NCBI GenBank assembly: GCA_002269645.1
Contig: NIVC01002068.1
Span: 143,342 to 207,341 of the forward strand
Length of the DNA stretch: 64,000 nt
Direction: 5' to 3'
Source of the DNA: Macrostomum lignano
Lineage: Eukaryota
How positions within the stretch are numbered: position 1 is the stretch's first letter; every line of letters starts with the position of its first letter. Made by a program: the position numbers and the translations under genes. The notes under the pieces were generated by a model that had not been told where the DNA came from, did not search any database, and saw only the letters and a program-made list of their open reading frames with translations. This document shows, piece after piece, positions 2,355-56,999 of this stretch.

Positions 2355-3650
2355 ATGAACGACCCACTGACACCAGTTTTCTACAAAATTAACAAGCCTA
2401 TTTTGAGTGATGATAGCACAATCAAAGCGACTCAGGTAAGAGTTCCCAGTCAGGAAAATCAGAATGAAACTAATCTTGGTCCTGGCCAAACACTGACATT
2501 TACATACAATGGATGTTCGTCTTTGGTCAGTGTCCACAGTCTAAGGAGCGGCTTCTATATGACGTTTCAATTCAAAACTAAAGGAGGCGCAGACGCCGCT
2601 CATGCTAATGATGATCTACACAATGCGGATGTCGCACTAACCAGTAATTTCTGGGCTTATATGTTCAAAGAGTTTAATGTGTCCAATGGAAGTACAGAGT
2701 TGGAAAGAATAGCAAACTTTGGTGTGGTCTATGATACCCAGTGCTTGATTGAGAACCCGGATTTTATTCAGATGGGGAGCGGTGCTGGATTCATCCCCAA
2801 TGAACAGACAGGAGATGAGAATGACCCTGGTTACAAAAAGAGAAAGGAGAGATACAACTATGCTCTTGCTGGTGAGAACGATGCTGCTAAGAATCCGCTG
2901 TTTAGGTCTGTAGATATTTTTGTACCTTTGAGGTTTATGAGTGGTTTCTGTAATAGTTTCAATCGGTTGACAAGCAACTTTAGCTACACATTTAGACTGA
3001 CTAGAGATGATCGGAACAGAGGAATTTGGTCGGGGGCCAATCATACATCGATGGAGATTAAGCTAACTGGTGTGGAGCTGTACTTAGAAATTATTGAGCC
3101 CAAGACTGCACTCAAAGCTGAATACTTGAAGGCGATTGAGAAAGACATTGATGTTGCTTATACAGCTTATATGTGCAGAGATGAGCGGAATGACGCAAGA
3201 CACAATATTTGCATTAAAGAAGGCTCCTGTAGCAATCCAAGGTACATTATTGTCACTATGAGGAATACAACTAATGTAGGTAGATATCTACATGGAAACA
3301 TTCGATCGATTCAACATGAGATCAGTGACAATTTATACCCTGCATTGCCACAAAATGGGAATTTCTCGGAGAACAAGATTAGTAAGTTTTACAATGAACT
3401 GTCGGACTTGGCTGTCAAAGAGAATAACGGTATTGTTTTGACAACCTTGCAGTATAAAAAACTATATCCAATATTTGGTGTTGATGTGACTGCTAGACAA
3501 ATGCCTACAGACAATAGCCCTGTTAACATTGTGACTAATATCGAGCGGAAAGAATTTGGTGCCGCAACGGCTGTTGATCTGTTTATTATCTATGCATTTG
3601 AGAGGAAGATCAAGGTCAATATGATCAATAACTCGTCTAGTAAAGTTTGA
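2355..3650 (+). CDS. Major capsid protein (double jelly-roll, Polinton/adintovirus hexon-like), 431 aa
   Basis: Intact beta-rich ORF of MCP size with Polinton MCP-like motifs: IFVPLRFMSGFCNSFNRL...FRLTR, PRYIIVTMR, LYPALPQNGNFSENKISKFYNEL, YPIFGVDVT. It lies directly upstream of the penton gene. Confidence 0.88.
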   Translation: MNDPLTPVFYKINKPILSDDSTIKATQVRVPSQENQNETNLGPGQTLTFTYNGCSSLVSVHSLRSGFYMTFQFKTKGGADAAHANDDLHNADVALTSNFWAYMFKEFNVSNGSTELERIANFGVVYDTQCLIENPDFIQMGSGAGFIPNEQTGDENDPGYKKRKERYNYALAGENDAAKNPLFRSVDIFVPLRFMSGFCNSFNRLTSNFSYTFRLTRDDRNRGIWSGANHTSMEIKLTGVELYLEIIEPKTALKAEYLKAIEKDIDVAYTAYMCRDERNDARHNICIKEGSCSNPRYIIVTMRNTTNVGRYLHGNIRSIQHEISDNLYPALPQNGNFSENKISKFYNELSDLAVKENNGIVLTTLQYKKLYPIFGVDVTARQMPTDNSPVNIVTNIERKEFGAATAVDLFIIYAFERKIKVNMINNSSSKV

Positions 3651-6145: not shown

Positions 6146-9100
6146 TGAGAAATGCCCGCAGACGAATTGCCTGCCGAGATTTGCCCACAGGAGATTTGCC
6201 CGTGGAGATTTGCCCGCCAAGCTTTATGTAGTCTCAGTGACAAGTACTTAAATAATAAATCAAGACACAACATCTTCCCCCTCTCTGAGAGGTTCACCAG
6301 CCGTAACGTTGCACCGGTCGCCACTGACGGTTCGAACGTCTCAGCGGTGGAGTCGCAGGTCCCGAGGCTGGTCCTAGTATTTGAACGTTGGTCTCTCCGC
6401 CGCATTGTGCAGGTTGTTGCCTTTGAATGTCCACGAGGGGGGGTCAAGCTCGTTTGGCCCTGGTGGCTCAGAATTCGGCCGCAAAGACGTTGGTACAAGC
6501 GCCTGCTGATTCCAGGTGCTGCCGTCCGTTAGTCTACACACGGTGTTCGTTCTCTTGACGATCTGTAGTGGTCCAGAAAGCCGCGTCCCCAGCTTTCCCT
6601 TTCGAACTGGACGATGCACTCGAACCCAGTCACCGGCGCACAATGTTGGTGGTCGCACCCCCGCCGCCGGTCGGTATAAGCTGCCGTTCGCTGCTGTCTC
6701 TCCTAAATTCGCTGGGCGATATCTGGTTGTGCCGCCGTGGTGTCCTTAAACGGGCCAGTAGAGACAGTGCAGTGCGCCAACGTCTTCTTAGCATCAGCTC
6801 CGCTGGACTCTTGCCAGTCAGGGCGTGCGGCGTACTGCGGTAGGTCTCAAGGAATTGCAACAGCGCGTCTTTCATTGGGACATTCTCTGCCCTGGCCGCT
6901 CGTATGCTGTCTACCAGAGTCCGGTTGAGCCTCTCCGTCTGGCCGTTCGTGCTCGGACGGTACGGGCTGGTCTTCTGATGCTGGATGCCGCGCTCCCGCA
7001 GGAACCCCGTGAGCGCATTGCCGAACTGCGGTCCGTTGTCCGTGAGCACCGTCTTGCAGAGACCCCAGCGAGCGAACAGGCTGCGTAACACTTTGCAGAT
7101 CGTCTCGGTGGTGATGTTTGACGTTGCAAATACTTCCGGCCATTTACTATGCAGATCCGTAATGACCAAAAGGAATCGTGACGATGCTGGTGCTGCCTGT
7201 AGCTCACCCACGATGTCGATGGCGATCTGTGTCCACGGCCCATCTGGCCACCGCAGAGGCTGCAGAGGAGCCGGTCGCAATTTGAAATTCTTTTCTGCGG
7301 TCTCGCAGGCACTGCAGTTTCTGACAAACGTTTCGACGTCGAAGTCCATCTTTGGCCACCAGGCAAACTCGCGGAGCTGCTGCTTAGTACGAACCACACC
7401 GGATGTCCGGCGTGCGCCGATTCCAGTAGGTTACGCCGCAGCTGATGTGAATGACTGCTCGCTCTTGGAAAGCCAGGCAATGTGCCATCCTGCCAAACGC
7501 TGAGGTGCTCTCTGACTTTGAAGAACGGGTGCAACTCTGTATCCTTCGTTGAGCCCCAGTTGCCGCTAGTCACTCGCTTAATCACCTCGCGCAGAACCGT
7601 GTCCTCGGCCGTTGCTGTCGCTAGCTGGGTAGGTGTTACTACTCGGACTCGAGGCATCGCAGTGTCCGGTAGCTGTACGATATTCATGTCCGACCCACAG
7701 CTCCACATTGACAACATGTCGGCCACGAAGTTCCGATTGCCTGGCGGATATTTACGTGGAAATCGTACTGTTGAAATCTGTCACACCAGCCATGGATGCG
7801 CAGCGGCCGATGTCCCGTGCCGCTGGGTCCCAACAGTAGTTGACGTACCGCTTGATGGTCTGTTCGCAGCTCAAAGTGACGCCCATATAGGTAGTAGTGC
7901 CACTTCTCCATGGCCCACAGACTGGCCAATGCCTCCTGCTCATTTGCAGCGTATCGCTTCTCGGTGTCGGTCAAGGCTCGGGCGGCAAAGGCGATTGGAC
8001 GCTCGACGCCGTCTTGGATCTGGGACAGGTTTGCACCGAGAGACTCCGCACTGGCGTCGCTGGTGACAATCGTCTCGGCCTCTGGGTCAAAGTGCGCCAG
8101 GATTGGTGGATTACAGATTGCTGCTTTTAGCTCTTGGAACGCTCTTTCGCAGTCCGTCGACCACTCGAACTCCGCATCCCCCTTCAGTAGGGCCCTCAGA
8201 GGCGCTGTGACTTCAGCAAATTTGGGCACAAAGCGCATCAGGTAGTTTGCAGATCCTAGGAACGCCTGCAGCTCCAATTCCGGTTAGACGGTGAGCGCAA
8301 CTGGCTGAATGCCTTGGTCTGGGACTCTGAAGGTCGCATACCGTCGGCTGAGAAGATGAGGCCAAAAAATTCTACCTCCGTCTTGCGTAGCAGGCATTTG
8401 TCCTTATTGGCCGTTAGGCCAGCGTCGTTCATACGCCCTAATAGCGCTCGCAGTCTTGAATCATGTTCAGTCATGTTTGCTCCGAAAACAAAAAAATCGT
8501 CCAGAATATGTTCGACCCCATGAAGTCCGGCTACTAAGTCGTCCAACATCCTTTGGAAGGCTGCTGGCGCTGACGCTAAGCCGAAAGGCACTCTGCAATA
8601 CCGATACAACCCCAGGTGCGTGATGAATGCTGTCAAGTCACGCGATGCCTCATCCAACTGCATGTAGCCAGCTTTGAGATCGATCTTTGAAAATACGCGG
8701 CCACTTTCTGCCTTGATCTTTGCCGAAATCTCGTCCAGCTGAGGCATCGGATGTCGATCGATTACAAGCGACTTATTCAGCTCTCGCACGTCGATGCAGA
8801 TTCGAATGTTGCGTCTTTCTTGTTTGCGACAACCATGTTGGATATCCATGGGCTGGAGTTTATTCGTTCAATGCGGTCAAGTTCTCCATGCGGTCAAGTT
8901 CATTGCCTATTTTCTGTTGCTTTGCGAGGGGAAGGCGGCGCAGCGGCTGCTGCACTGGTAGCACAGCTGCATTTACTCTCGGCTTGTGCACCGCCCCTTT
9001 GCAGAGTCCGATTAGACCACTGAAAACCGCTGGGAACTCCTCCGCTATGTCTACACTGGCGATACTATTCTCAACCTCCGGAGGCTGCAGTTGTACCCGG

Positions 9101-9260: not shown

Positions 9261-9576
9261 AATTTTGTTTAAAACATGAAAACTAAAAAAGTCTGGCTGA
9301 GTTGGGTAAATTTGGATGCAAAGCGTCATCTGAAGTAAAACTATAGACGGCTCAAAGCAGAGACCGAAACGCTCCATTCGTTTCTTTTTCAATTTCAAAC
9401 TGTTTTCTCCGCGTTTAGTCTTTTATTTGACAATACTGGTGGTCTTGCCAGGAAAAGAGCTGCTGAATAACGTGAACTTGTCTAATGACTTGTCCAATGG
9501 GCACTTAAGGAGCATCTTTACCAATGGGGAGAACTATAAACAGAATTAAGGACATCTTTATGAGTGAGAGGACATT

Positions 9577-10113
9577 TCCAACAGTTTGGGAACATGTCTA
9601 ACAGTTTGGGAACATGTCCAACAGTTTGGGAACATGTCTAACAGTTTGGGAACATGTCCAACAGTTTGGGAACATGTCTAACAGTTTGGGAACATGTCCA
9701 ACAGTTTGGGAACATGTCCAACAGTTTAGGAACATGTCCAACAGTTTGGGAACATGTCCAACAGTTTGGGAACATGTCCAACAGTTTGGGAACATGCCCA
9801 ACAGTTTGGGAACATGTCCAACAGTTTGGGAACATGTCCAACAGTTTGGGAACATGTCCAACAATTTGGGAACATGTCTAACAGTTTGGGAACATGTCCA
9901 ACAGTTTGGGAACATGTCCAACAGTTTGGGAACATGTCCAACAGTTTGGGAACATGCCCAACAGTTTGGGAACATGCCCAACAGTTTGGGAACACGCCCA
10001 ACAGTTTGGGAACATGTCCAACAGTTTGGGAACATGTCCAACAGTTTAGGAACATGTCCAACAGTTTGGGAACATGTCCAACAGTTTGGGAACATGTCCA
10101 ACAGTTTGGGAAC
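9577..10113 (+). repeat. 20-bp minisatellite (CCAACAGTTTGGGAACATGT, ~27 copies); resumes at ~10503-10578
   Basis: Read directly; source of all ORFs from 9598 to 10207. Confidence 0.97.
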
Positions 10114-11502: not shown

Positions 11503-11627
11503 TCAGATATCTGGCTGCTGGCTGTCGCACTGCGCCTTGTAGCGCAGCAGGCACTGCGCCAGGAACTCGATCGGGTCCACGGGCCTCGCGTTCGCTACCT
11601 CGGCCATTGAGCTGGCCAGTGCTGGCT
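11503..11627 (-). CDS. Terminal exon encoding a Dpy-30 dimerisation/docking motif (not in ORF track)
   Basis: Acceptor CATTCCAG at 11628; with the phase-1 donor at 12184 the join reads [47 protein letters not shown], matching the Dpy-30 consensus YLxxxxxPxLxxGLxxxxxxRPxDPIxFLAxYL. Confidence 0.85.
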
Positions 11628-14600
11628 CTGGAATGAAGAAATGGGGGGAATTTTGTAGTGCTCAACGAGTTCCGTAGGGTAAGGAATCTAAAGACACCAC
11701 TATAGAAAGGACTCTGAAGACACCACACTCTGAGAAGGATCTGAATACACCACTCTCGGGGAAGGACCCTGAAGACACCGCTCTCTCAGGAGGCTGAAGA
11801 CACCGCTTTCTGAGCAGGACTCTGAAGACAATACTCTGAGAGAAGGAACCGGAAGAAATCATTGTGGGAAGGACTTTGAGGACACCAATTTGGGAAGGGA
11901 GGACTCTGAACACAGCACTGTGGAAATGACTTTGAGGACACCAATGTGGGAAGGACCTGAAGATACCAATTCTCTGAGAAGGACCCTGAAGACACCACTG
12001 TGGGAAGGAATCTGAAGGCACAATTTTGAGGATTCTGAAAAATCCCACTGGGATGAAATAAGATCAGTAACTTCCCTCAGCGAAGAATCCCAACTTCAAT
12101 TAAGCCTTCCGGAATACATCTAGGGCAATAACGCCTATTAACTACCACGTATTAAGTTGTAATCAACAACCCCTTGAATCTCACTCAGCATGTCCAGGTA
12201 TTCCGGTCTTGGACCAGGTGCTCTCGCCGGCGAACCGACACTCGAGTCTGTATTCGCCTTTTCATCAATCGCCTTCATCGAGTGCATCTGGGCAGCTCCA
12301 TCAGCAGCAACTAGCGGTTGCGGGTCGTGAAGCTCAAACAGCATGATTGGTGCGTTATGCGTCAGCACCAGCAGGTCCCGACCATCTTCCCCAACCAAGC
12401 AGAGTCCGAAAGGATCCGACTCAAACAGGTAGTTTGCAACGCGGCGTCCATCACTGATTACATAGACCTGGAGTGCAGAAATTAAACGCAGTCATTGAGA
12501 AAAGGCATCTTTAGATCGGATTCTTATAAGCGTAAGCATTAAAAGATTTGCCATTCCCAATAACAATCGTTGCTAATCTCACCTGCAAGCCTCGAGGCGG
12601 AACAATTGCGAACATGTCCGAATTGTTCATGGATTCGTCATCGAATACGGCGAACTCCACCTCGTAGGCGGGAAAGTACACCTGGCCAACAAGCAGGCTG
12701 CAGTCTGGCGTGGCCTGCAGTCTAACAAAGTACAAGTCCTCGTCCTGGCTGAGACAGCGGATCACTTCGCCTTTCATGTAGTCCACAATTTGAAGCTTGT
12801 AGTTGACCAGGTGCTGGTTGTCGTGGAGGAAGGCCACTGCGGGTCCCATGTCGAACACTTTGCCGATGGAGTGCTGGAACTGCATCTCGCTGGTCGGAGT
12901 TCCTTTCTCCACGTCGCTGTAGTCGAGGCGCACAACCGCGCCGAGCCAAATCGGAGGAACTCCGACGCCGACGCGAATCTCCTCGGACGCTTTGAGGTGT
13001 TGGCTGAAGGCCAGGTTGAGCGTGCACTTCTCTGGCAGGAACTGAATGTCGACAAGGTCATTGCGATTATTCAATCGCTTTTTTAGAAACTTTTCTTCCT
13101 TCGCTTTCTTAGCCGCTTCCGTCAGCTCTTCTTCATCGCCTTTGGTTTCGGTTGAATTCTCTTCCCTGGTCTCCTGGTTTTCGGAAGGCTCCTTCGTCTC
13201 TTCCTTCTTGTCTTTCTTCCTCTTTTGCTTTTTACTGCCTTTCTTCTTAGATGTCGCCTTTAGACCGCCATAAATGACCTCTGAAAACTCTGAGAGCCTG
13301 TCTAGCTGAATCCACGCTGTGCAAACTCTCTTTGAAGCTGTACTGAACGTGGCACTTAAGTGAAATTAAGCACTGTCGAGATTCATCAAGAAATCCTAAT
13401 TCTAGAGAATTTGATCCATGCGAAATCGGAGTCTGGGCGAAGATGTTGTTCTTTGAGATACGCAGTGAAGCCTGTAGTTCCATTTCTTTGTCACTCGATT
13501 CGTTTTCTGCGTCGACGTGAAATTTGAACTCGACCCCTCCAACTGATTTGGACTTACGACTTTGAAGGAGTTCCTCCTTTGATGTGCTACCAAAAACTTT
13601 TTCTACCAGCTGGTTGCTGATCACTGAGATGCCAACAGAAAAAGGAGCTTTCGGATCGCGGCGAAGCTCAATAATGGGAGGTTTATCCGACAGCCTGAGC
13701 GTCTCTACCTGATCGTCTTCTTTCGAGTCGCGTGAAGAGGACTTCTTAACCACCAGTGTCCGAGTGTTCAATGAAATCAGAGCCTCATTAGTGCGAATGT
13801 CAACCGTGTGACAATCGGTGAGCGCTGTCGCATTCTTACACGGCTTGAACTGAGTATACATTGGAAGCAGTGCATCCTCTTCGCTGTGGTGACTAAGCTT
13901 GTCGGTGAAGTGTTTCAAATTGTACACCTTAGTCATGATGAACATTCGCTCGTCAGAGTCGCCAGCAGACTCGTCAGGAAAATGGCAGATAGTGAAGAAG
14001 TCCGTGCCTTTCGGCTGGCCACAAAGAAAGCTTTCGGCCGTTCCCAGGGAGATTCCTTCCAAAAGTTCGCCAGTTTGCACGGACCACACAAGTAGAAGCA
14101 CCTTAGAACCAGACGTAACTAGCAGTCGCTCGTCTTCGGTAAATTTAGCCTGCGTTCCGTCACCAAAACTTGATGCAGCCTTTTTGAACTTGTCTTGCTC
14201 AGGTGATATTGTCATCCCAACAGCGCGCTTTTCGTCACAGTCATACAACAGACCGCGAAGAACGCTTGTTTGACCGTATAATCTGGACTTTCTCTTCAGA
14301 AGGAAAGTCATTCGACGACGACTTGGGCTTACGAAATTCTGACTGTACTTTATATCGAAGCTTTCCTGAAGGTCCACAATACAAATGGGCTTGAGGCTGT
14401 CAGAGATGGCGAATGTAACGAAAAAAGTACTGTCTTGCTTCCCACTGCCTTCTTCAGCAGATTTTGTTGCGTTTACAATAGCAACGATGTTTCCCTCATG
14501 ATCAATGAGACAGGAGCTAGCAGAAACTTCTTCAGCTTGCTGAAGTAACTCGATGGTCTTCGATTTCAAGTCGGCTTCACTCGCTGCCGGACTTTCGTCC

Positions 14601-17600
14601 GCTTTTGTCTTCTCGTCATTTTCATCCGGTGTCTTTTCTTCTTTCTTATTGTCAGGTTGCTTTAGTGGTGAGTGGCGCCACATGGACTCAAGTTCCGCTT
14701 TGTCAGCTGACTTGAAGATGTCAGGCAAAGAACCTCGAACGATCTCTTTCGTGTTTAAGTTCATGAACACGAGCAATGTTGAGTGGTTGCTGCCTGCCTC
14801 GATCCCAAAGCACAGCAAGTTGTTTTTGCTATCGAGGTTTTGGGTGCCGATTCTTGACGTTCCGCTTGTATTTTCTTCATAAAGCGCAACAAACTTCTTC
14901 TCTCCGAGTGACAGCAGTCTAAGAGTGCTTGTTCCCGTTGAGTCACTCTTTCCCTTGCAACAAAGCACATAGTCCTTTGTCACATATTCTACGTCATCAG
15001 ATGACACACTCCATGATGGGTCCAGAGTCATCAGTTTCGTCACCCTGCCGTTCATGAAGTCGACTCGAACGAGATCTTGCGACTTCTGCGCCTCTTCCTC
15101 TCCAGATATCATCTTCTTCATCATCCCGTCTACGTCCAGCTTCTCCATGATGCTGTCTGGAATCTCTCCAGCGTTGAGCGATTCCATCATGTCTCGCAGC
15201 TCTTGCGGCACATCCTTGTTGCACGCTTCGTATTCTTCGATCTCCTCTTGGATCTTCTTCCGACCCATGTTAAGGACAAGCGCCTGCATGTCGTCCTCGG
15301 TGACACCGGCATTCTTCGAGCGCATCGATAGCACGTGCATTACGCAGTCGCCTGGGATGTATCCAGTCGACATGTACTTCATGCTGAGGAACAGGTTGTA
15401 GTCGGAGCTGAACCGTTTGATCTCATTTCCCTCGATGTCGTACCAGGTGACTTCGTTGTTGATGAGTGAGAAGGACACCAGCTGACCGTTGGGCATGACC
15501 AGTCCCATTCCGAGTCCGAGATCAAAGCTGGAGTAGAGAACTCCAGACCCGGAGTCGAAGCACTGCACCTTCGGGATGAGGCAGCAGTTGCTGAGAGCCT
15601 GTTTCGACTGGCGACACTGGTTGAGCAGCAGCTTCACTCGAGGACAGTCCTTCTCGTACATGATGAGCCGACCGATGAGATCAACGCTCAGATTGACAGG
15701 GTCGTATACGAGACTCTGAGCGGAGAGTCGGATTGCATTGTACACGAGCTCGGCCTCTTTGATGTACTCGACACCGAGCTTCTGCGGGAGGTCGAGGTCT
15801 CTCAGCAGCAGGTACCGAGACGTGCCCTTCAGCTTGTTGAACATGAAGTCGTAGTCAAACACAATGTAGTCGTAGAACTCGTTCACTCGACCGGACTTGA
15901 TGAGGTGCCACGGCAGCTCGTTCAGCTTTCGCAGGTTGTACTGAGCAGTGCCGTCCTCATCTTTGCGGAGCACGAATGGCTGCTCGGGAACGGCTCGGTC
16001 CTCCATTGAGAACTCGGGCAGGTTCTGGAGTGAGAACGAATGCATGAACGGCTCAGTAAGTCGGTTCAGAGAACAGATCAATTTCAGTGCTCATCACTTA
16101 CGAGCTTCTTGCGCAGATAGGCTGGGTACACGAACTTCTTTCTCCTGCCGCTCCACAGACCCAAGAAGTAGTCTGCCATGATAGAGTGAATGTCCCGTCT
16201 GGTCTTTTCGTCCGACAAGAAGTACTCCTGAGCCACCTCGATGAACTGTCGGTGGTACCAGAACACTACCCGGATGTTGTCCGCCTCTCTCTCGACCAGG
16301 TAAGAGCCAATGTCGTGACGCAGTCGAGCCCAGCAGATCGGCGGGATGCGGATGAAGGGCGGCAGGTGATGCTGAAACACGTCAATGAGGACGGCGTCAT
16401 CCAGACTGAGCAGATCCTCCAGCTCCGACTCTGACAGTCCGTTTCTCGATGCAGTGATAAATGCCAGGGCGTGAGAGGTCTGGAAAAACAAATGAGCAGA
16501 GAGAGTCATTCTGACTAGAATAATCCAATCACTGTAGATAAGTGGATAGTTGTGGAATATTCTCACTAGCCTGGGCTACAGTAACTAACACGAACGAAAT
16601 ACTTACAAAAAGCCTGCCGTGCTTCAACTCGAGTTTCTCGAACAGCTGAAATATTGCCTGACGAACGGTGTAGCGCAGAGACGACTCATCTACCTGTTGG
16701 TAAGAGCGCCATCTCAGAACCTCGTGGTACAGCAGGTGAACATAGATTGGCAGTGAGCACTTGGAGAATGCCTGCTCGACCAGAGCCCATTGCTGCTCGT
16801 TCAGAGTGCGACCTTGTTCGCTGAGCAGAGCCGACAAAATGCTGGTGCACAGACTGGTCTCCAGTGGCGTCACCTCCACGTAGATGTCTGGGTTAGGCAG
16901 CTTCCCTTTGAATGTCTTCAGCAAATCGAACATGTTGGGCAGAGTGGACACAACCATCTTCACGTTGGCAGGCAATGGCGTCCGCACCCACGTCAGATGG
17001 TAGGCACCGTCAGAGCTGTCCAGCTGATCAACACTGTCAAGGAACACCAAGATTCTCCTGAACTGGCCCATGCGTTCGAGCATGGAGTAGAAGGTGTTCA
17101 AGATCTCCTTGAAGTCGTCGAGTGACTCGCACTTTTCCTGGTCGTCCTCGTTGCCGAACACAGCGAGCTGACGGCACAGATACTTGAGTGTCTGTCGAAT
17201 GCTCGACGTACCGGGACTGGTGCCGAGGAATCGCAACAGCACGATGGCATCTTTGGAATCGGACTCTGGCAACCAGCTTCGCACCAGACTGGCGGCCTTG
17301 CCAAGTAGAGAGGTCTTGCCGCTGCCCGAGTCGCCGTACACCACCAGAGGCTCCGTTGTGTTGCTCGCTTGCACATAAGCTTTCACCTTGTCGATGATCT
17401 CTTGCCGACCCTGGAACTTCTTCACGTAGTTGACGCATGCAGTCGAGTGCTGCAGCACCTCCGAGTAGAGGTCGTCCGATCGGAGCCGCATGCTCTCCCG
17501 CACGGATTCGGCCACGAGGCGCTTCACATTATCGCAGTAGTCGCTGCCAAACTTTTCCAGATAGTCTTTGTGGCTACTCATGCCCACACCCTCAGCGTCA

Positions 17601-18779
17601 TTGGTCCATTTTAGTGAGTAAGTGAAGGAATTGGATCCCGCCATTCGAGTCAGAACGTGTCTGTTCAACTCCTTGACCATCGCGTTCACAGCTTCATCAA
17701 GAACCTTTACTGCCTCGCCATCTTCGTTCAAAGAGTCGGTCAGGTCGATGAACTTGAACATCTTTCCTCGAGAGAAGTCGCGCTGAGACTCCAGATCAGA
17801 GAATTCTCTCACGAATGCGAGAGCCTGAGCCAACTTTTGCGGAGGTTTTGACAATATTCCGCTGATCACCTCCATCTCGGTGACAGACGCCGTGAACTTC
17901 TTCATTGTCGCGTGCGAGATCAAAGTCTTTTGAAGACACAACTCGGCACCTCTCTTCATGAGTCCGATGATGGAGTCTTGGACAGCTTCCCACCGCTGTC
18001 GAGCAGCTTTCAAGAGCTCCTTGTCCGCCTGGAACAATGAATTACGAGATTAGAGGTTATTAAATTTATCCTTTTGCAAACTCTGAAAAACAAGCGCTGC
18101 ATTAATCGTTAAAAATCACACTTACCGCCTCTGCTAGAGTTGCAATCGGTCTCAGCACGCAGATTGGTGGCTTGTTGTTCTCATCGATCGTGTACCACTC
18201 GTGTAGACACGAGACGTCGCGTCCGTCCTCCTTCAACGCTTCCACGATGTTGTTGAAAACGTCGACCTCGACAAGGGCTGCAGGCGGCTGGTTGCCATAG
18301 CGCTGACCCAGCAGACAGATGAAGTAGGGGCCGGCTGACATGATGAGCGAGTTGTCGATCTCTTGGTAGCACATGTACGGACCCTGGTGGTCGAGCTGTA
18401 CCTCGTCACCGACTCCCCATCGCATGTCGATGGTTTGAAACTCGAGTCCGAAGGAGTCGCGGCAGAACTTTTTCAGCCTTGGATTGACGTGCTGCATGAG
18501 GTAGTTGCGCTCCGTTCCCATGTCCGAGAAGGTGGACGACAGGAAGATGCGCACGACGCGGCTGTTCATGATCGGCAGGTCGTCCAGACGGCCTTTCATG
18601 ACTTTTAGGTAGACTGCTAATGGGTCAAACTCGGTGAGCGCTCCTATCATTTCCGAGTGTTTGGTCAGCCGTTTGTGCAGCGCAGGCCGCTTGGCTGACC
18701 GCACTGGCCGCGAGTGGCGGCTGTGAGCTGAGCCGATCCGTTCGGCCCCTCCCACATCGGAGGGCTCTCGTGAATTCAT
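11503..18779 (-). CDS. NACHT and WD-repeat-type (NWD1/NWD2-like) protein, ~2100 aa: DUF4062-like N-terminus, NACHT NTPase, helical region, divergent beta-propeller region, C-terminal Dpy-30 motif
   Basis: Predicted exons 18779-18126, 18028-16607, 16479-16102, 16024-12583 (frame break or unresolved small intron near 13370), 12467-12185, 11627-11503; all placed junctions are GT-AG with matching phases. Motifs [12 protein letters not shown]...TIDMRWGV; Walker [12 protein letters not shown]; Walker [10 protein letters not shown]; [27 protein letters not shown]; LVFWYHRQF-like; EDRAVPEQP...[13 protein letters not shown]. Confidence 0.85.
11690..12050 (+). repeat. Degenerate ~22-25-bp minisatellite (GGAAGGACTCTGAAGACACC core) in the last NWD-like intron
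   Basis: Recurring GGAAGGAC(T/C)CTGAAGA(C/T)AC units. Confidence 0.75.
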
Positions 18780-37868: not shown

Positions 37869-39630
37869 TGGCAGAGATGGGGGAGATGCAGAGATGCGGG
37901 AGATGCAGAGATGGGGGAGATGCAGAGATGGGGAGATGCAGAGATGAGGGAGATGAAAGAGATGGGAGAGATGCAGAGATGGGGGACATGCAGAGATGGG
38001 GGACATGCAGAGATGGGGGACATGCAGAGATGGGGGAGATGCAGAGATGGGGGACATGCAGAGATGGGGGACATGCAGAGATGGGGGACATGCAGAGATG
38101 GGGGACATGCAGAGATGAGGGAGATGCAGAGATGGGGGAGATGCAGAGATGGGGGAGATGCAGAGATGGGGGAGATGAAAGAGATGGGAGAGATGCAGAG
38201 ATGGGGGAGATGCAGAGATGGGGGACATGCAGAGATGGGGGAGATGCAGAGATGGGGGAGATGCAGAGATGGGGGAGATGCAGAGATGGGGGAGATGCAG
38301 AGATGGGGGAGATGCAGAGATGGGGGAGATGCAGAGATAGGGGAGATGCAGAGATGGGGAGATGGCAGAGATGGGGGAGATGCAGAGATGGGGGAGATGC
38401 AGAGATGGGGGAGATGGCAGAGATGGGGGAGATGCAGAGATGGGGGAGATGCAGAGATGGGGGAGATGCAGAGATGGGGGAGATGCAGAGATGGGGAGAT
38501 GCAGAGATGGGGGAGATGCAGAGATGGGGGAGATGCAGAGATGGGGGAGATGCAGAGATGGGGGAGATGCAGAGATAGGGGAGATGCAGAGATGGGGGAG
38601 ATGGCAGAGATGGGAAAGATGCAGAGATGGGGGAGATGCAGAGATGGGGGAGATGCAGAGATGGGGGAGATGCAGAGATGGGGGAGATGGCAGAGATGGG
38701 GGAGATGCAGAGATGGGGGAGATGGCAGAGATAGGGGGATGCAGAGATGGGGGAGATGCAGAGATGGGGGAGATGGCAGAGATGGGGGAGATGCAGAGAT
38801 GGGGGAGATGCAGAGATGGGGGAGATGCAGAGATGGGGGAGATGCAGAGATGGGGGAGATGCAGAGATGGGGGAGATGCAGAGATGGGGGACATGCAGAG
38901 ATGGGGGAGATGCAGAGATGGGGGAGATGCAGAGATGGGGGAGATGCAGAGATGGGGGAGATGCAGAGATGGGGGAGATGCAGAGATGGGGAAGATGCAG
39001 AGATGGTGAAGATGGCAGAGAGGGTGAGATGAAAGAGATGGGGGAGATGCAGAGATGGGGGAGATGCAGAGATGGGGGAGATGCAGAGATGGGGGAGATG
39101 CAGAGATAGGGGAGATGCAGAGATGGGGGAGATGCAGAGATGGGGGAGATGCAGAGATGGGGGAGATGGCAGAGATGGGGGAGATGCAGAGATGGGGAGA
39201 TGGCAGAGATGGGGGAGATGCAGAGATTGGGGAGATGCAGAGATGGGGGAGATGCAGAGATTGGGGAGATGCAGAGATGGGGGAGATGCAGAGATAGGGG
39301 AGATGCAGAGATGGGGGAGATGGCAGAGATGGGGGAGATGGCAGAGATGGGGAGATGGCTGAGATGGGGGAGACGGCAGAGATGGGGGAGATGCAGAGAT
39401 GGGGGAGATGGCTGAGATGGGGGAGACGGCAGAGATGGGGGAGATGCAGAGATGGGGGAGATGCAGAGATGGGGGAGATGGCAGAGATGGGGGAGATGGC
39501 AGAGATGGGGGAGATGGCTGAGATGGGGGAGATGGCAGAGATGGGGGAGATGGCAGAGATGGGGGAGATGGCTGAGATGGGGGAGACGGCAGAGATGGAG
39601 AGATGCAGAGATGGGGGATGGGAAAGATGG
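37869..39630 (+). repeat. G/A-rich ~17-bp minisatellite (GATGCAGAGATGGGGGA), degenerate
   Basis: Read directly; explains ORFs 37505..39709. Confidence 0.95.
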
Positions 39631-42640: not shown

Positions 42641-45091
42641 GAGCGGATCAGGGGATCAGGGGATCAGGAAGCGGAGGGGATCAGGAAGCGGAGGGGATCA
42701 GGAAGCGGAGGGGATCAGGAAGCGGAGGGGATCAGGAAGCGGAGGGGATCAGGAAGCGGAGGGGATCAGGAAGCGGAGGGGATCAGGAAGCGGAGGGGAT
42801 CAGGAAGCGGAGGGGATCAGGAAGCGGAGGGGATCAGGAAGCGGAGGGGATCAGGAAGCGGAGGGGATCAGGAAGCGGAGGGGATCAGGAAGCGGAGGGG
42901 ATCAGGAAGCGGAGGGGATCAGGAAGCGGAGGGGATCAGGAAGCGGAGGGGATCAGGAAGCGGAGGGGATCAGGAAGCGGAGGGGATCAGGAAGCGGAGG
43001 GGATCAGGAAGCGGAGGGGATCAGGAAGCGGAGGGGATCAGGAAGCGGAGGGGATCAGGAAGCGGAGGGGATCAGGAAGCGGAGGGGATCAGGAAGCGGA
43101 GGGGATCAGGAAGCGGAGGGGATCAGGAAGCGGAGGGGATCAGGAAGCGGAGGGGATCAGGAAGCGGAGGGGATCAGGAAGCGGAGGGGATCAGGAAGCG
43201 GAGGGGATCAGGAAGCGGAGGGGATCAGGAAGCGGAGGGGATCAGGAAGCGGAGGGGATCAGGAAGCGGAGGGGATCAGGAAGCGGAGGGGATCAGGAAG
43301 CGGAGGGGATCAGGAAGCGGAGGGGATCAGGAAGCGGAGGGGATCAGGAAGCGGAGGGGATCAGGAAGCGGAGGGGATCAGGAAGCGGAGGGGATCAGGA
43401 AGCGGAGGGGATCAGGAAGCGGAGGGGATCAGGAAGCGGAGGGGATCAGGAAGCGGAGGGGATCAGGAAGCGGAGGGGATCAGGAAGCGGAGGGGATCAG
43501 GAAGCGGAGGGGATCAGGAAGCGGAGGGGATCAGGAAGCGGAGGGGATCAGGAAGCGGAGGGGATCAGGAAGCGGAGGGGATCAGGAAGCGGAGGGATCA
43601 GGAAGCGGAGGGGATCAGGAAGCGGAGGGGATCAGGAAGCGGAGGGGATCAGGAAGCGGAGGGGATCAGGAAGCGGAGGGGATCAGGAAGCGGAGGGGAT
43701 CAGGAAGCGGAGGGGATCAGGAAGCGGAGGGGATCAGGAAGCGGAGGGGATCAGGAAGCGGAGGGGATCAGGAAGCGGAGGGGATCAGGAAGCGGAGGGG
43801 ATCAGGAAGCGGAGGGGATCAGGAAGCGGAGGGGATCAGGAAGCGGAGGGGATCAGGAAGCGGAGGGGATCAGGAAGCGGAGGGGATCAGGAAGCGGAGG
43901 GGATCAGGAAGCGGAGGGGATCAGGAAGCGGAGGGGATCAGGAAGCGGAGGGGATCAGGAAGCGGAGGGGATCAGGAAGCGGAGGGGATCAGGAAGCGGA
44001 GGGGATCAGGAAGCGGAGGGGATCAGGAAGCGGAGGGGATCAGGAAGCGGAGGGGATCAGGAAGCGGAGGGGATCAGGAAGCGGAGGGGATCAGGAAGCG
44101 GAGGGGATCAGGAAGCGGAGGGGATCAGGAAGCGGAGGGGATCAGGAAGCGGAGGGGATCAGGAAGCGGAGGGGATCAGGAAGCGGAGGGGATCAGGAAG
44201 CGGAGGGGATCAGGAAGCGGAGGGGATCAGGAAGCGGAGGGGATCAGGAAGCGGAGGGGATCAGGAAGCGGAGGGGATCAGGAAGCGGAGGGGATCAGGA
44301 AGCGGAGGGGATCAGGAAGCGGAGGGGATCAGGAAGCGGAGGGGATCAGGAAGCGGAGGGGATCAGGAAGCGGAGGGGATCAGGAAGCGGAGGGGATCAG
44401 GAAGCGGAGGGGATCAGGAAGCGGAGGGGATCAGGAAGCGGAGGGGATCAGGAAGCGGAGGGGATCAGGAAGCGGAGGGGATCAGGAAGCGGAGGGGATC
44501 AGGAGGCGGAGGGGATCAGGAAGCGGAGGGGATCAGGAAGCGGAGGGGATCAGGAAGCGGAGGGGATCAGGAAGCGGAGGGGATCAGGAAGCGGAGGGGA
44601 TCAGGAAGCGGAGGGGATCAGGAAGCGGAGGGGATCAGGAAGCGGAGGGGATCAGGAAGCGGAGGGGATCAGGAAGCGGAGGGGATCAGGAAGCGGAGGG
44701 GATCAGGAAGCGGAGGGGATCAGGAAGCGGAGGGGATCAGGAAGCGGAGGGGATCAGGAAGCGGAGGGGATCAGGAAGCGGAGGGGATCAGGAAGCGGAG
44801 GGGATCAGGAAGCGGAGGGGATCAGGAAGCGGAGGGGATCAGGAAGCGGAGGGGATCAGGAAGCGGAGGGGATCAGGAAGCGGAGGGGATCAGGAAGCGG
44901 AGGGGATCAGGAAGCGGAGGGGATCAGGAAGCGGAGGGGATCAGGAAGCGGAGGGGATCAGGAAGCGGAGGGGATCAGGAAGCGGAGGGGATCAGGAAGC
45001 GGAGGGGATCAGGAAGCGGAGGGGATCAGGAAGCGGAGGGGATCAGGAAGCGGAGGGGATCAGGAAGCGGAGGGGATCAGGAAGCGGAGGG
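42641..45091 (+). repeat. Near-perfect 17-bp minisatellite (GAAGCGGAGGGGATCAG, ~143 copies)
   Basis: Read directly; only isolated variants (~43596, ~44505). Confidence 0.99.
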
Positions 45092-46410: not shown

Positions 46411-47130
46411 CGCCCGCTGGTTGATTTTTCACCTCTTAAACCATCGATTTTAGCACCGACAGGCAAGATTTTAGCGCTAATTTAGCGCCGGCAAGTAGTG
46501 CAATAAGTTTGTACTCAAATACCGTAAATTTATATTCAGCTTTAAAGTGAGACCAAGTGGATCAAAGCTCAGTTAACCTCAACTAAACCGAAGTTACGAA
46601 TGTGTCACCCGCTCTGAGAGAGGGGGTCAGTGAGAGCGCGGGTGCTCAATTTGATGGAGTGCATGACGCAGAGAATTAATTTGAAAAAAAGCAACTTTTT
46701 ATTCAATTTTTTATTTGGTTTTTTGAGTTTTGAGTTCGATTGACAGAGAGCTTGCTCAGAACAACGCGGGATCCAACTCAAACCCATTGTTGAACAAGTT
46801 TATGGAGGCCAAGTCATAAATGGGATGATTTTTCCCCGAGAGTTTTCTCTGCAACTGGATTGAAACAATTAAATTCAAACGCATTGAATCGATTTTTAGA
46901 ATTGGGTAAAGCAAAAAATTGCATGCTTGATTGGCAAAAATTGGCAACAATTGATCCATCAATGCAAATTTTAATGGGCTTCTTTATCAACTGGAAAAAT
47001 GAAAAATAGAAATTAAATGAGGAATAAAATGAAAAATTGGCTAAAATGTTTGCGAGGTAAAGTTTAAAATCAAAATTAACTTGCTTGTAGATTCAAAATT
47101 GAATAGCAAACGGTAGATTTAAGCTCGATG

Positions 47131-49255
47131 GTAGATAAGAAAGGGTAGAATAGGATTCAATGGTAGATATAAGAATGGTAGACGCGGATTCAATGGTAGA
47201 TATAAGAAAGGTAGACGCGGATTCAATGGTAGATATAAGAAAGGTAGACGCGGATTCAATGGTAGATATAAGAATAGTAGACACGGGTTCAATGGTAGAT
47301 ATAAGAAAGGTAGACGCGGATTCAATGGTAGATATAAGAATAGTAGACACGGGTTCAATGGTAGATATAAGAATAGTAGACACGGGTTCAATGGTAGATA
47401 TAAGAAAGGTAGACGCGGATTCAATGGTAGATATAAGAATAGTAGACACGGGTTCAATGGTAGATATAAGAATAGTAGACACGGGTTCAATGGTAGATAT
47501 AAGAAAGGTAGACGCGGATTCAATGGTAGATATAAGAATGGTAGACGCGGATTCAATGGTAGATATAAGAAAGGTAGACGCGGATTCAATGGTAGATATA
47601 AGAAAGGTAGACACGGATTCAATGGTAGATATAAGAAAGGTAGACGCGGATTCAATGGTAGATATAAGAAAGGTAGACACGGATTCAATGGTAGATATAA
47701 GAAAGGTAGACGCGGATTCAATGGTAGATATAAGAATAGTAGACACGGGTTCAATGGTAGATATAAGAATAGTAGACACGGGTTCAATGGTAGATATAAG
47801 AATGGTAGACACGGATTCAATGGTAGATATAAGAAAGGTAGACACGGATTCAATGGTAGAAATAAGAAAGGTAGACGCGGATTCAATGGTAGATATAAGA
47901 AAGGTAGACGCGGATTCAATGGTAGATATAAGAAAGGTAGACACGGATTCAATGGTAGATATAAGAAAGGTAGACGCGGATTCAATGGTAGATATAAGAA
48001 AGGTAGACACGGATTCAATGGTAGATATAAGAAAGGTAGACGCGGATTCAATGGTAGATATAAGAAAGGTAGACACGGGTTCAATGGTAGATATAAGAAT
48101 AGTAGACACGGGTTCAATGGTAGATATAAGAATGGTAGACACGGATTCAATGGTAGATATAAGAAAGGTAGACACGGATTCAATGGTAGAAATAAGAAAG
48201 GTAGACGCGGATTCAATGGTAGATATAAGAAAGGTAGACGCGGATTCAATGGTAGATATAAGAAAGGTAGACACGGATTCAATGGTAGATATAAGAATAG
48301 TAGACACGGGTTCAATGGTAGATATAAGAAAGGTAGACGCGGATTCAATGGTAGATATAAGAAAGGTAGACGCGGATTCAATGGTAGATATAAGAAAGGT
48401 AGACGCGGATTCAATGGTAGATATAAGAAAGGTAGACACGGATTCAATGGTAGATATAAGAAATGTAGACGCGGATTCAATGGTAGATATAAGAAAGGTA
48501 GACACGGATTCAATGGTAGATATAAGAAAGGTAGACGCGGATTCAATGGTAGATATAAGAATAGTAGACACGGGTTCAATGGTAGATATAAGAATAGTAG
48601 ACACGGGTTCAATGGTAGATATAAGAATAGTAGACACGGGTTCAATGGTAGATATAAGAAAGGTAGACACGGATTCAATGGTAGAAATAAGAAAGGTAGA
48701 CGCGGATTCAATGGTAGATATAAGAAAGGTAGACGCGGATTCAATGGTAGATATAAGAAAGGTAGACACGGATTTAATGGCAGATATAAGAAAGGTAGAC
48801 GCGGATTCAATGGTAGATATAAGAAAGGTAGACGCGGATTCAATGGTAGATATAAGAATAGTAGACACGGGTTCAATGGTAGATATAAGAAAGGTAGACG
48901 CGGATTCAATGGTAGATATAAGAAAGGTAGACACGGATTCAATGGCAGATATAAGAAAGGTAGACGCGGATTCAATGGTAGATATAAGAAAGGTAGACGC
49001 GGATTCAATGGTAGATATAAGAATAGTAGACACGGGTTCAATGGTAGATATAAGAAAGGTAGACACAGATTCAATGGTAGATATAAGAAAGGTAGACGCG
49101 GATTCAATGGTAGATATAAGAATAGTAGACACGGGTTCAATGGTAGATATAAGAATGGTAGACACGGATTCAATGGCAGATATAAGAAAGGTAGACGCAG
49201 ATTCAATGGTAGATATAAGAAAGGTAGACGCGGATTCAATGGTAGATATAAAAAT
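47131..49255 (+). repeat. 33-bp minisatellite (ATTCAATGGTAGATATAAGAAAGGTAGACGCGG, ~64 copies, 3 main variants)
   Basis: Read directly; explains the ~700-aa ORFs on both strands. Confidence 0.98.
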
Positions 49256-55648: not shown

Positions 55649-56493
55649 GTTCATCGCAGTGACGCAGCCAATCAAGTACTCGAAGCACAAAAACTCGAAA
55701 CGGACGCGCTTCACCATCGCGGCCACCTGGCTCCTGTCCATCGCCATCGCCTTGCCGATCGGCTGCGGCCTGCAGAACCTCAACGGCATTCGCAACCGGC
55801 CCATGTTCAAGGACACGTGCACCTTTTTCCACGGAGACTTCCTGATCTACTCCAGCCTAGGCAGCTTCTACATCCCCTGCTTCGTCATGCTGGTGCTGTA
55901 CTACCGCATCTTCAAGGTCATCTGGCAGAGAGCCAGACGGGCCGCGGCGGGCAAGCGCGGCAAGATCTACCAGAACCAGAAGGTGGCCGCCGACGAGGAC
56001 AACGACACGGACGGGCTGGATCCGGGTGGCGCCAAGCAGTCGGCGGCGCCAGCCAAGAAGGCGCTGCTGCTGGTCCGCGCCAATCCGAAGCGGCCGAACA
56101 ACCTCAGCGTCAGCGTCAGCCGCGGCGAACCGCGTCGCAGCCCGTCCGGCGTCGTTGATCTTGAAGGCGACGACGATTTCACCTTGTCGACAAATAACTC
56201 GGCACCGCTAAACGAGAGCATGAACTTCGCCGGACCGTCGACCTCCGACAACAGCGGGGCCCAGAGCGACGCTTGCGAGACCCGCCTGACGGAGGGCCCG
56301 GCCGGCAAGAAGCAGCAGAAGCATCAGAAGCAGCAGAAGCAGCAGAAGCAGCAGCCGCAGCAGCAGCAGCCGCAGCAGCAGCTCTTCCGCATGAAGATCA
56401 AAAAGAAGAAGCGAAAGTCGGCCGGCACGAAGGCCGAGAGGTCGGCGGCGCGGTTGGAAAAGAAGGCAACAAAAACGCTGGCGATTGTGCTGG
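55649..56493 (+). CDS. DRD2: D2-like dopamine receptor, exon 3: ICL2, TM4, TM5, long ICL3, start of TM6
   Basis: GCCGCAG|G completes DRF; FIAVTQPIKY...TWLLSIAIALP...FLIYSSLGSFYIP (TM5 catechol-binding serines)...EKKATKTLAIVL(G)|GTGAGA, phase 1. Confidence 0.93.
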
Positions 56494-56999
56494 GTGAGAG
56501 AGCGGGCGGTTGCTGGGCGGGTGGCACCAGTAAGCCAGCTAACCGATTGCATTCCCCGATGAAGTGTATTAAAAAGGCGAATTCCGTGTCAACTTAGAGC
56601 TTACATGTACTGCTACAATGGAAACTGTCACGGGGCAGAGCAGCTCAGCTGAGAAGTGTCTGACTCTCGCCCCATGACCCTTGGCTTGATTTCGTTTGCG
56701 GCCGCATTCGTTTATGGCTCGTGGGCACGGAAGGGACACAGAGTGTACATGCCTGACGATTAGAGAGTCAAAGGGCTGCAGTACACCCTGTGTGAGCGTG
56801 TGTGAGTGCGTGCCTGCTTACAGTATTGGCGCGCTTGTATGTGCTCAGGACTCAGCGGAATGGGCTGAGTTGCCCCAGCGCTGGCTGAAGGACAATGTCG
56901 GCGAAGGCGTTGCGCCAGACAGCCCAGAATCATCCTGCAAAAGTTCATGTCTATTCAACATCTTGAAGCTGTCTTCAAAGATCCAAAGTGGAATTTTGT

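Follow-up and report, generated by a model that had tools for sequence, protein, structure and literature searches.

Gene structure

In this study we analyzed a stretch of 64,000 nucleotides from the flatworm Macrostomum lignano (contig NIVC01002068.1 of assembly GCA_002269645.1; hereafter the window, whose numbering is used throughout) and one gene within it, which encodes a STAND protein related to NWD1 and NWD2 (NWD type) that ends in a Dpy-30 domain. The gene lies on the minus strand, fills positions 11503-18779 and was built as seven exons encoding 2008 amino acids with a single stop at the end. All introns of this model are GT-AG introns and their lengths range from 77 to 557 nt. Exon 1 (18126-18779) begins with the ATG at 18779 and ends at a GCG/GTAAGT donor (the slash marks the splice boundary); it encodes an N-terminal tail and the start of the DUF4062/TeTIR domain, including an RWG motif at 18414-18422 (residues 120-122). 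The remainder of this domain and the NACHT domain are encoded by exon 2 (16607-18028), where an SVTEMEV motif is found at 17867-17887 (residues 266-272), the NACHT domain at 16820-17350 and, within the latter, the Walker motif at 17309-17335. Exon 3 (16102-16479), delimited by splice sites, shares an NWD1-like winged-helix domain (16207-16663) with the end of exon 2. Exon 4 (13558-16024) completes the NWD1/2-homologous region, which extends to residue ~1022, and continues into a flatworm-specific beta-rich region. It is followed by a putative intron 4 (13281-13557; C/GTAAGT ... TTTTCAG/AG), an open-reading stretch that is homologous to coding sequence in a paralog, and by exon 5 (12583-13280), which encodes a Lys/Glu-rich insert and a C-terminal beta module conserved across the flatworm homologs. 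The final beta blade, a linker and the first part of the Dpy-30 domain (PRPEYLDML, 12186-12212) are located on exon 6 (12185-12467), and exon 7 (11503-11627) supplies the rest of the domain and the TGA stop at 11503-11505.

The last intron, intron 6 (11628-12184), is a phase-1 intron inside the Dpy-30 motif. Exon 6 ends with GAA TAC CTG GAC ATG CTG A at the donor CTG A/GTGAGA, the intron starting at 12184; the intron ends with TTCATTCCAG, exon 7 begins with AG CCA GCA at 11627, and the A and AG on both sides of the junction form a Lys codon. The original prediction had proposed a phase-matched GT-AG splice from 12185 to 11627 joining EYLDML to a Dpy-30 motif, and the gene model reproduces this junction exactly. 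The in-frame stop at 12138 that it had named as a possible transcript end is present as well, since without splicing of intron 6 the frame meets a stop at 12140-12138. It had also considered that the Dpy-30 exon might belong to another gene. The motif, however, straddles the splice junction, and therefore exon 7 cannot be part of a different gene. Besides the read-through stop, intron 6 holds a degenerate 26-bp tandem repeat (11681-12021, 12.6 copies, 68% matches).

The NWD-type body

The protein had been labelled as NACHT/WD, and its first half agrees with the NACHT part of this label. Pfam recovered DUF4062 at residues 77-166 (E 2.2e-8), NACHT at residues 445-621 (E 3.4e-9; AAA_16, E 1e-10) and the winged helix HTH_NWD1 (PF25469) at residues 674-783 (E 1.3e-10, 41.7 bits vs a cut-off of 27). 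In the NACHT domain the Walker A motif is intact (GDSGSGKTS, residues 450-458), and an acidic Walker-B-like motif is present at residues 545-555. By BLASTP, residues 54-1022 together aligned to nemertean, annelid, horseshoe-crab and frog NWD proteins with 32-38% identity and E values down to 0. Past residue 1022, the sequence (~1000 residues) is flatworm-specific by BLAST.

The WD part of the label is putative and is based on orthology and on one profile-profile match. No Pfam family of the WD40/beta-propeller group matched residues ~819-1950 at E<=10. When the flatworm C-terminal alignment was compared by hhalign with the WD regions of NWD2 proteins from outside the flatworms, only the last conserved beta module (residues ~1782-1924) was aligned, with the final blades of NWD2 (Prob 90%, E 1.6e-6). 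The last 330 residues, modelled by AlphaFold from a 7-sequence alignment, came out beta-rich but at low confidence (pLDDT 50), and this model was not used for a fold search. Judged from these comparisons, the region is probably a strongly diverged descendant of the NWD WD40 propellers in which no array can be recognised. The window protein has DUF4062/TeTIR, NACHT and PF25469 in common with NWD1 and NWD2, and its last beta blades appear remotely homologous to theirs, but it differs from them in the lack of a Pfam WD40 match, in ~1000 flatworm-specific residues and in its Dpy-30 ending.

Two preprints from 2026 describe the DUF4062 (TeTIR) domain of TEP1, NWD1, NWD2 and NPHP3 as a TIR-like NADase; in vitro TEP1 was active, NWD2 weak and NWD1 inactive. 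The N-terminal domain of the window protein aligned to the TIR-like chain of TEP1 (11gz_A, E 8e-11), with its RWG and SVTEMEV motifs placed on RWG and TEMEV of TEP1. Mapped via R908, R942 and E1008 of TEP1, the second Glu of SVTEMEV would correspond to the catalytic E1008. TEP1, a vault and telomerase protein with the order TROVE-vWA-TeTIR-NACHT-WD40, shares the RWG motif and the TEMEV glutamate with the window protein, whereas its TROVE/vWA region is absent from the latter, a putative NADase.

The C-terminal Dpy-30 domain

The Dpy-30 motif noticed in the spliced C-terminus was confirmed by sequence and fold. The curated gathering cut-off of Pfam PF05186 (Dpy-30) is 22 bits. Exon 7 alone scored 35.0 bits (E 1.2e-8), the spliced tail 35.6 bits and the whole protein 32.0 bits, and by these scores the match is far beyond chance for the 40-residue exon 7. 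In a phmmer search of the PDB sequences, the spliced tail matched human DPY30 best (3g36, E 5.7e-6), in an alignment that opens at P..YLD in exon 6 and runs on through exon 7. Further matches were DYDC1/2, Chlamydomonas DPY30, a nucleoside diphosphate kinase and AK7. An AlphaFold monomer model of the last 61 residues, based on a 30-sequence alignment, reached a pLDDT of 86.8 and contained two helices at 14-34 and 39-56. With this model, the top 25 Foldseek hits in the PDB were all Dpy-30 dimerisation/docking (D/D) domains (target TM 0.71-0.80, about 0.74; root-mean-square deviation 1.5-1.6 A; 49% identity). The tail is a genuine Dpy-30 domain by its Pfam match, by its PDB sequence matches and by the AlphaFold model with its Foldseek hits.

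DPY30 itself, the COMPASS/MLL subunit (3g36, 4riq, 6e2h), forms the same two-helix hairpin and is 49% identical over 43 positions. It is a free-standing protein of ~100 residues, whereas the domain described here makes up the last 45 residues of an ATPase of 2008 residues. More similar in this respect are the axonemal proteins DYDC1/2, NME5, AK7 and Chlamydomonas RSP2/RSP23, in which a Dpy-30 docking module is likewise appended to a larger protein; DYDC1/2 and AK7 were also among the sequence and fold matches of the flatworm tails. However, these axonemal carriers are kinases or structural spoke proteins and none of them is a STAND NTPase. The free-standing proteins that aligned best presumably are DYDC-like, as compared by eye with the human DYDC2 sequence. 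The RIIa domain (PF02197) was also considered as an identity for the tail and was rejected on its scores (13-14.3 bits vs a cut-off of 22.4). The RII-alpha D/D domain of protein kinase A, which is bound by A-kinase anchoring proteins (AKAPs), belongs to the same fold superfamily, gave weak matches of 13-16 bits and appeared in the fold search (4zp3), but the signature RP.DPIEFLA is of the Dpy-30 type.

Paralogs in Macrostomum lignano

The nearest proteins to the window product are from M. lignano itself, with 95-98% identity. The BOX15_ models in GenBank belong to the Mlig_3_7 assembly and go back to RNA-seq data that had been assembled with the genome as a guide. In BOX15_Mlig023669g3, BOX15_Mlig021732g1, BOX15_Mlig013297g3 and BOX15_Mlig012608g1-3 the NWD body is joined to a Dpy-30 end. 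BOX15_Mlig023669g3 is a fragment of 420 residues whose model begins 1.3 kb from the contig start, and BOX15_Mlig021732g1 has 1841 residues and the same tail sequence spanning the junction. The RNA-seq-derived models of near-identical paralogs thus use the intron 6 junction of the window. Moreover, the UniProt model A0A1I8HEY0 (P0003) equals the window model from the NACHT domain to the stop, the exon 4/5 junction included, and A0A1I8HIM4 (P0002) is without a Dpy-30 domain solely through a frame-shifting acceptor in its model.

Similar endings were found in more distant relatives. In M. lignano, at least three lineages of NWD paralogs with 41-43% identity to the window protein, for example BOX15_Mlig013297g3 and BOX15_Mlig012608g1-3, end in Dpy-30 with 35-49 bits. 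At the Mlig013297 locus (L002) a phase-1 intron (ATC C/GTGAGT...ACAG/GT) splits the motif at the codon that is split in the window too. Upstream of BOX15_Mlig013297g3, positions 1-302 of L002 (NIVC01003854.1) contain a second NWD C-terminal fragment on the opposite strand. This fragment corresponds to P0122 and shares 59% identity with the aligned part of the Mlig013297g3 protein, an arrangement that suggests clustered NWD paralogs.

In comparison with the paralog L001, exon 7 is 99.2% and exon 6 97.5% identical, while identity in the adjoining 3' untranslated region is ~75%. Intron 6 is 76-90% identical and measures 557 nt in the window and 1430 nt in L001. In total 17 differences were counted over 944 nt, about 10 of which change an amino acid (counted against P0001); these are too few for an informative ratio of nonsynonymous to synonymous substitutions.

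Distribution of the tail among flatworms

With HMMER, a profile of the C-terminal 330 residues was searched exhaustively against 1.84 billion representative proteins, a segment of P0003 standing in for the near-identical window model. Among the top-hit clusters with a named source, this 330-residue module was found only in flatworms, and the remaining matches were small Dpy-30 proteins that align through the motif alone. A word-index search with the C-terminal 305 residues or with a 15-sequence profile gave only P0001, a 420-residue M. lignano fragment. Since this index evidently misses long proteins for such queries, the distribution described here is based on the other homolog searches.

Trematode orthologs from six Schistosoma species, Paragonimus, Calicophoron and Fasciolopsis carry diverged tails of the type ...DYFEESGLTEMMKKAMFDVVDKRPIDPISYIAKSLLKQ, and the Fasciolopsis ortholog shows the complete architecture in 2234 residues. 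A diverged Dpy-30-like tail is also present in an ortholog of the monogenean Cichlidogyrus, and the pattern common to trematode and monogenean tails is ...V.D/N.RP.DPI..hA..h. Each of these tails had Dpy-30 as its top Pfam match (Fasciolopsis, 23.9 bits; Cichlidogyrus, 21.2; S. haematobium, 17.4; Calicophoron, 15; Paragonimus, 11.9). A profile built solely from trematode tails matched nothing but Dpy-30-family chains when run against the PDB (best E 0.003). When seven flatworm proteins were aligned over their last 330 residues, 21 columns proved invariant, and five of these are part of the 40-residue motif.

In S. mansoni the RefSeq model Smp_145280 (L003 42976-45472, NC_031502.1) does not use a phase-1 GTAAGT donor and ends by read-through. 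The exon that it lacks, (T)EMMKKAMFDVVDKRPTDPISSIAKSLLEQHHSQNN followed by a stop, is located 2.3 kb downstream at L003 45362-45472 behind a good acceptor. Window, L002 and S. mansoni share a phase-1 intron at the same codon. Errors at the 3' end like that of Smp_145280 were also seen in the Heterobilharzia model P0019 and in the M. lignano models P0002 and P0005. To judge from these alignments, the Dpy-30 tail is an old and conserved feature of flatworm NWD proteins, and the comparison supports an architecture that marks a flatworm-wide subfamily represented in Macrostomum, in trematodes and in a monogenean.

C-termini of NWD proteins outside the flatworms

PF05186 was found in none of the NWD1/NWD2 homologs from outside the flatworms among the matches listed, which agrees with the earlier statement that NWD1 and NWD2 have no such domain. 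Many of these proteins end differently. Among the 45 homologs listed (P0020-P0064), 19 have a C-x-x-x ending, often after runs of Lys/Arg (for example ...KNQKSRACVVS, ...KQKKMKKSCFRCRIL and ...KEQKKKTSQVCHIV). Among their sources are nemerteans, Owenia, Tachypleus, amphioxus, Xenopus, many fishes, rotifers and Seison, and no flatworm NWD protein in the same listing ends in Cxxx. The resemblance of these endings to a polybasic-CaaX signal suggests prenylation. We found no paper tying NWD1 to prenylation in a literature search. The Dpy-30 domain of the flatworm proteins thus sits where their relatives likely have a membrane anchor.

Discussion

The gene analyzed in our study belongs to a known family, of which it represents a real variant specific to its lineage. 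In our view the findings are explained best, and with reasonable probability, by one NWD-type STAND gene whose Dpy-30 tail is old in flatworms and serves as a swapped-in C-terminal anchoring module. The tail is read as a swapped anchor because its position equals that of the polybasic and CaaX-like ending of many NWD proteins outside the flatworms, so that a protein scaffold would be used instead of the presumed lipid anchor. By analogy to DPY30, DYDC1/2, NME5 and AK7, two tails would pair into an X-type four-helix bundle, which would make the resting receptor a dimer. The tail could then dock the receptor on an amphipathic helix of some scaffold, as described for DPY30 and ASH2L, for radial-spoke proteins and for RII and AKAPs. 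Such anchoring would fix the site where a NACHT-driven oligomer gathers the TIR-like effector domains and turns active. Both tethering and dimerisation through the tail are inferred from these related domains. The same holds for the AKAP-like, axonemal or chromatin scaffold of the original prediction, to which the receptor might be tethered by analogy with Dpy-30 domains in other proteins.

A more far-reaching proposal is that C-terminal anchoring is a general design of NWD receptors, with polybasic-CaaX endings in most animals and Dpy-30 docking swapped in early in flatworms, and that a NAD-cleaving or other effector is set free at a defined place in the cell. As scaffold one might think, for example, of an axonemal component of the radial spoke or central pair, or of an AKAP-like protein. 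We regard this generalisation as doubtful.

Several observations weigh against the anchoring explanation. The trematode tails, with the exception of Fasciolopsis, score under the Pfam cut-off, and the cestode models (Schistocephalus) as well as the model of the monogenean Protopolystoma end before the tail. The homolog searches retrieved no planarian sequence, and conservation across the phylum thus appears incomplete, through loss or through the coverage of the databases. CaaX processing of NWD proteins is unreported, and an exchange of anchors sets two inferred functions side by side. Moreover, human NWD1 and NWD2 have little or no NADase activity in vitro, and the effector chemistry may therefore differ. 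Finally, the window copy stays in frame only by a 277-nt splice of a stretch that is coding in a paralog.

A somewhat unlikely alternative is that the tail serves the assembly of the receptor itself, either by pre-dimerising it or by binding an internal amphipathic helix, with auto-inhibition or NACHT oligomerisation as the outcome. Solved structures show Dpy-30 domains as obligate dimers, and activation of STAND proteins relies on induced proximity of effector domains, both of which fit such a role. However, no candidate internal helix was identified, and the position equal to the CaaX-like endings of the relatives suggests localisation rather than assembly.

The in-frame argument leads to a second alternative, which we consider unlikely, namely that the window copy is a degenerating homeolog whose protein ends at ~13247 or is not made, and in which the Dpy-30 exon is kept merely by recent duplication. 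Relative to the paralogs P0004 and L001, indels near 13300 shift the frame of the window copy, and a Lys/Glu-rich insertion of 130 nt is present in addition. Splicing from C/GTAAGT at 13558 to the acceptor at 13280 removes 277 nt and restores the frame, and P0003 was modelled with the same exon 4/5 splice, whereas P0004 and L001 read straight through. The putative intron 4 thus keeps an open frame and corresponds to homologous coding sequence elsewhere, and many recent duplicates exist in M. lignano, as this alternative would expect. Against it, the strong GTAAGT donor and the in-phase acceptor bring the frame back, an independent and slightly different copy, P0003, shares both structure and model, the other exons are free of stops over ~2000 codons, and the high exon identity to the paralog (97.5-99.2%) contrasts with that of the 3' untranslated region given above. 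The exon 4/5 junction is nevertheless a model choice for the window copy and not certain: a new intron may be in use, or the copy may be decaying or truncated. In either case degeneration would touch one copy only, and the conclusion on the architecture is untouched by this caveat. The Lys/Glu-rich insertion itself (~13118-13252) is found in the window copy, P0002 and P0003 and not in L001 and P0004, and it adjoins the frame-changing indels.

That the Dpy-30 exon stems from a separate downstream gene, or that the fusion is an annotation or assembly chimera, is highly improbable: the open reading frame track stops at 12138 and the models P0002, P0005, P0011 of S. mansoni and P0019 of Heterobilharzia are without Dpy-30, but intron read-through or a wrong acceptor explains these models, within exon 6 the first helix start P..YLD of the intron-split motif directly adjoins the NWD beta blade, the NWD/Dpy-30 junction is repeated in RNA-seq-based models of four loci, and the same motif is split in Schistosoma.

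The question of the novelty of the architecture has two sides. A literature search revealed no description of an NWD/NACHT protein with a Dpy-30 domain, and recent papers on TeTIR/DUF4062 make no mention of Dpy-30, flatworms or CaaX. UniProt shows the architecture through Pfam matches that were assigned automatically to unreviewed M. lignano entries, none of which is curated. The original prediction of a potentially undescribed subfamily is thus supported by the flatworm-wide tail and by the absence of a description in the literature, and is limited by this automatic Dpy-30 annotation. Its reservation that the architecture might already be catalogued widely applies only in the trivial sense of these automatic matches, and nothing curated or published was found. 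Knowledge of the effector of the family is recent, as a TIR-like NADase was attributed to NWD1, NWD2 and TEP1 only in the 2026 preprints. A conserved, lineage-specific exchange of the C-terminus would suggest that receptors of this class have to be anchored within the cell in order to function. The isolated tail of 45-60 residues is a possible bait for the scaffold, both in a transgenic flatworm amenable to RNA interference and in schistosomes. Besides, there is a consequence for annotation, as several public models including Smp_145280 (GCF_000237925.1) omit or mis-splice the last exon.

Other features of the window

Outside the NWD gene, an open reading frame on the plus strand at 2355-3647 contains a double-jelly-roll-like domain (PF21738, E 9e-9), and another one on the minus strand at 6630-7394 encodes a retroviral-type integrase (rve and an H2C2 zinc-binding domain). 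Together they may be the remnant of a Polinton/Maverick-like or a long terminal repeat element. On the plus strand at 55659-56594, an open reading frame of 312 residues matches G-protein-coupled receptors of the rhodopsin family (7tm_1, E 4e-13). Very dense micro- and minisatellite arrays were found at 29000-54000 and elsewhere. Among the arrays are (AGAT)x518 at 32811-34885, a 17-mer x102 at 37871-39618, a 17-mer x143 at 42658-45091, a 33-mer x64 at 47128-49251 and a 20-mer x27 at 9572-10113. The satellite arrays fall in stretches of strong GC skew and contain most of the long spurious open reading frames.

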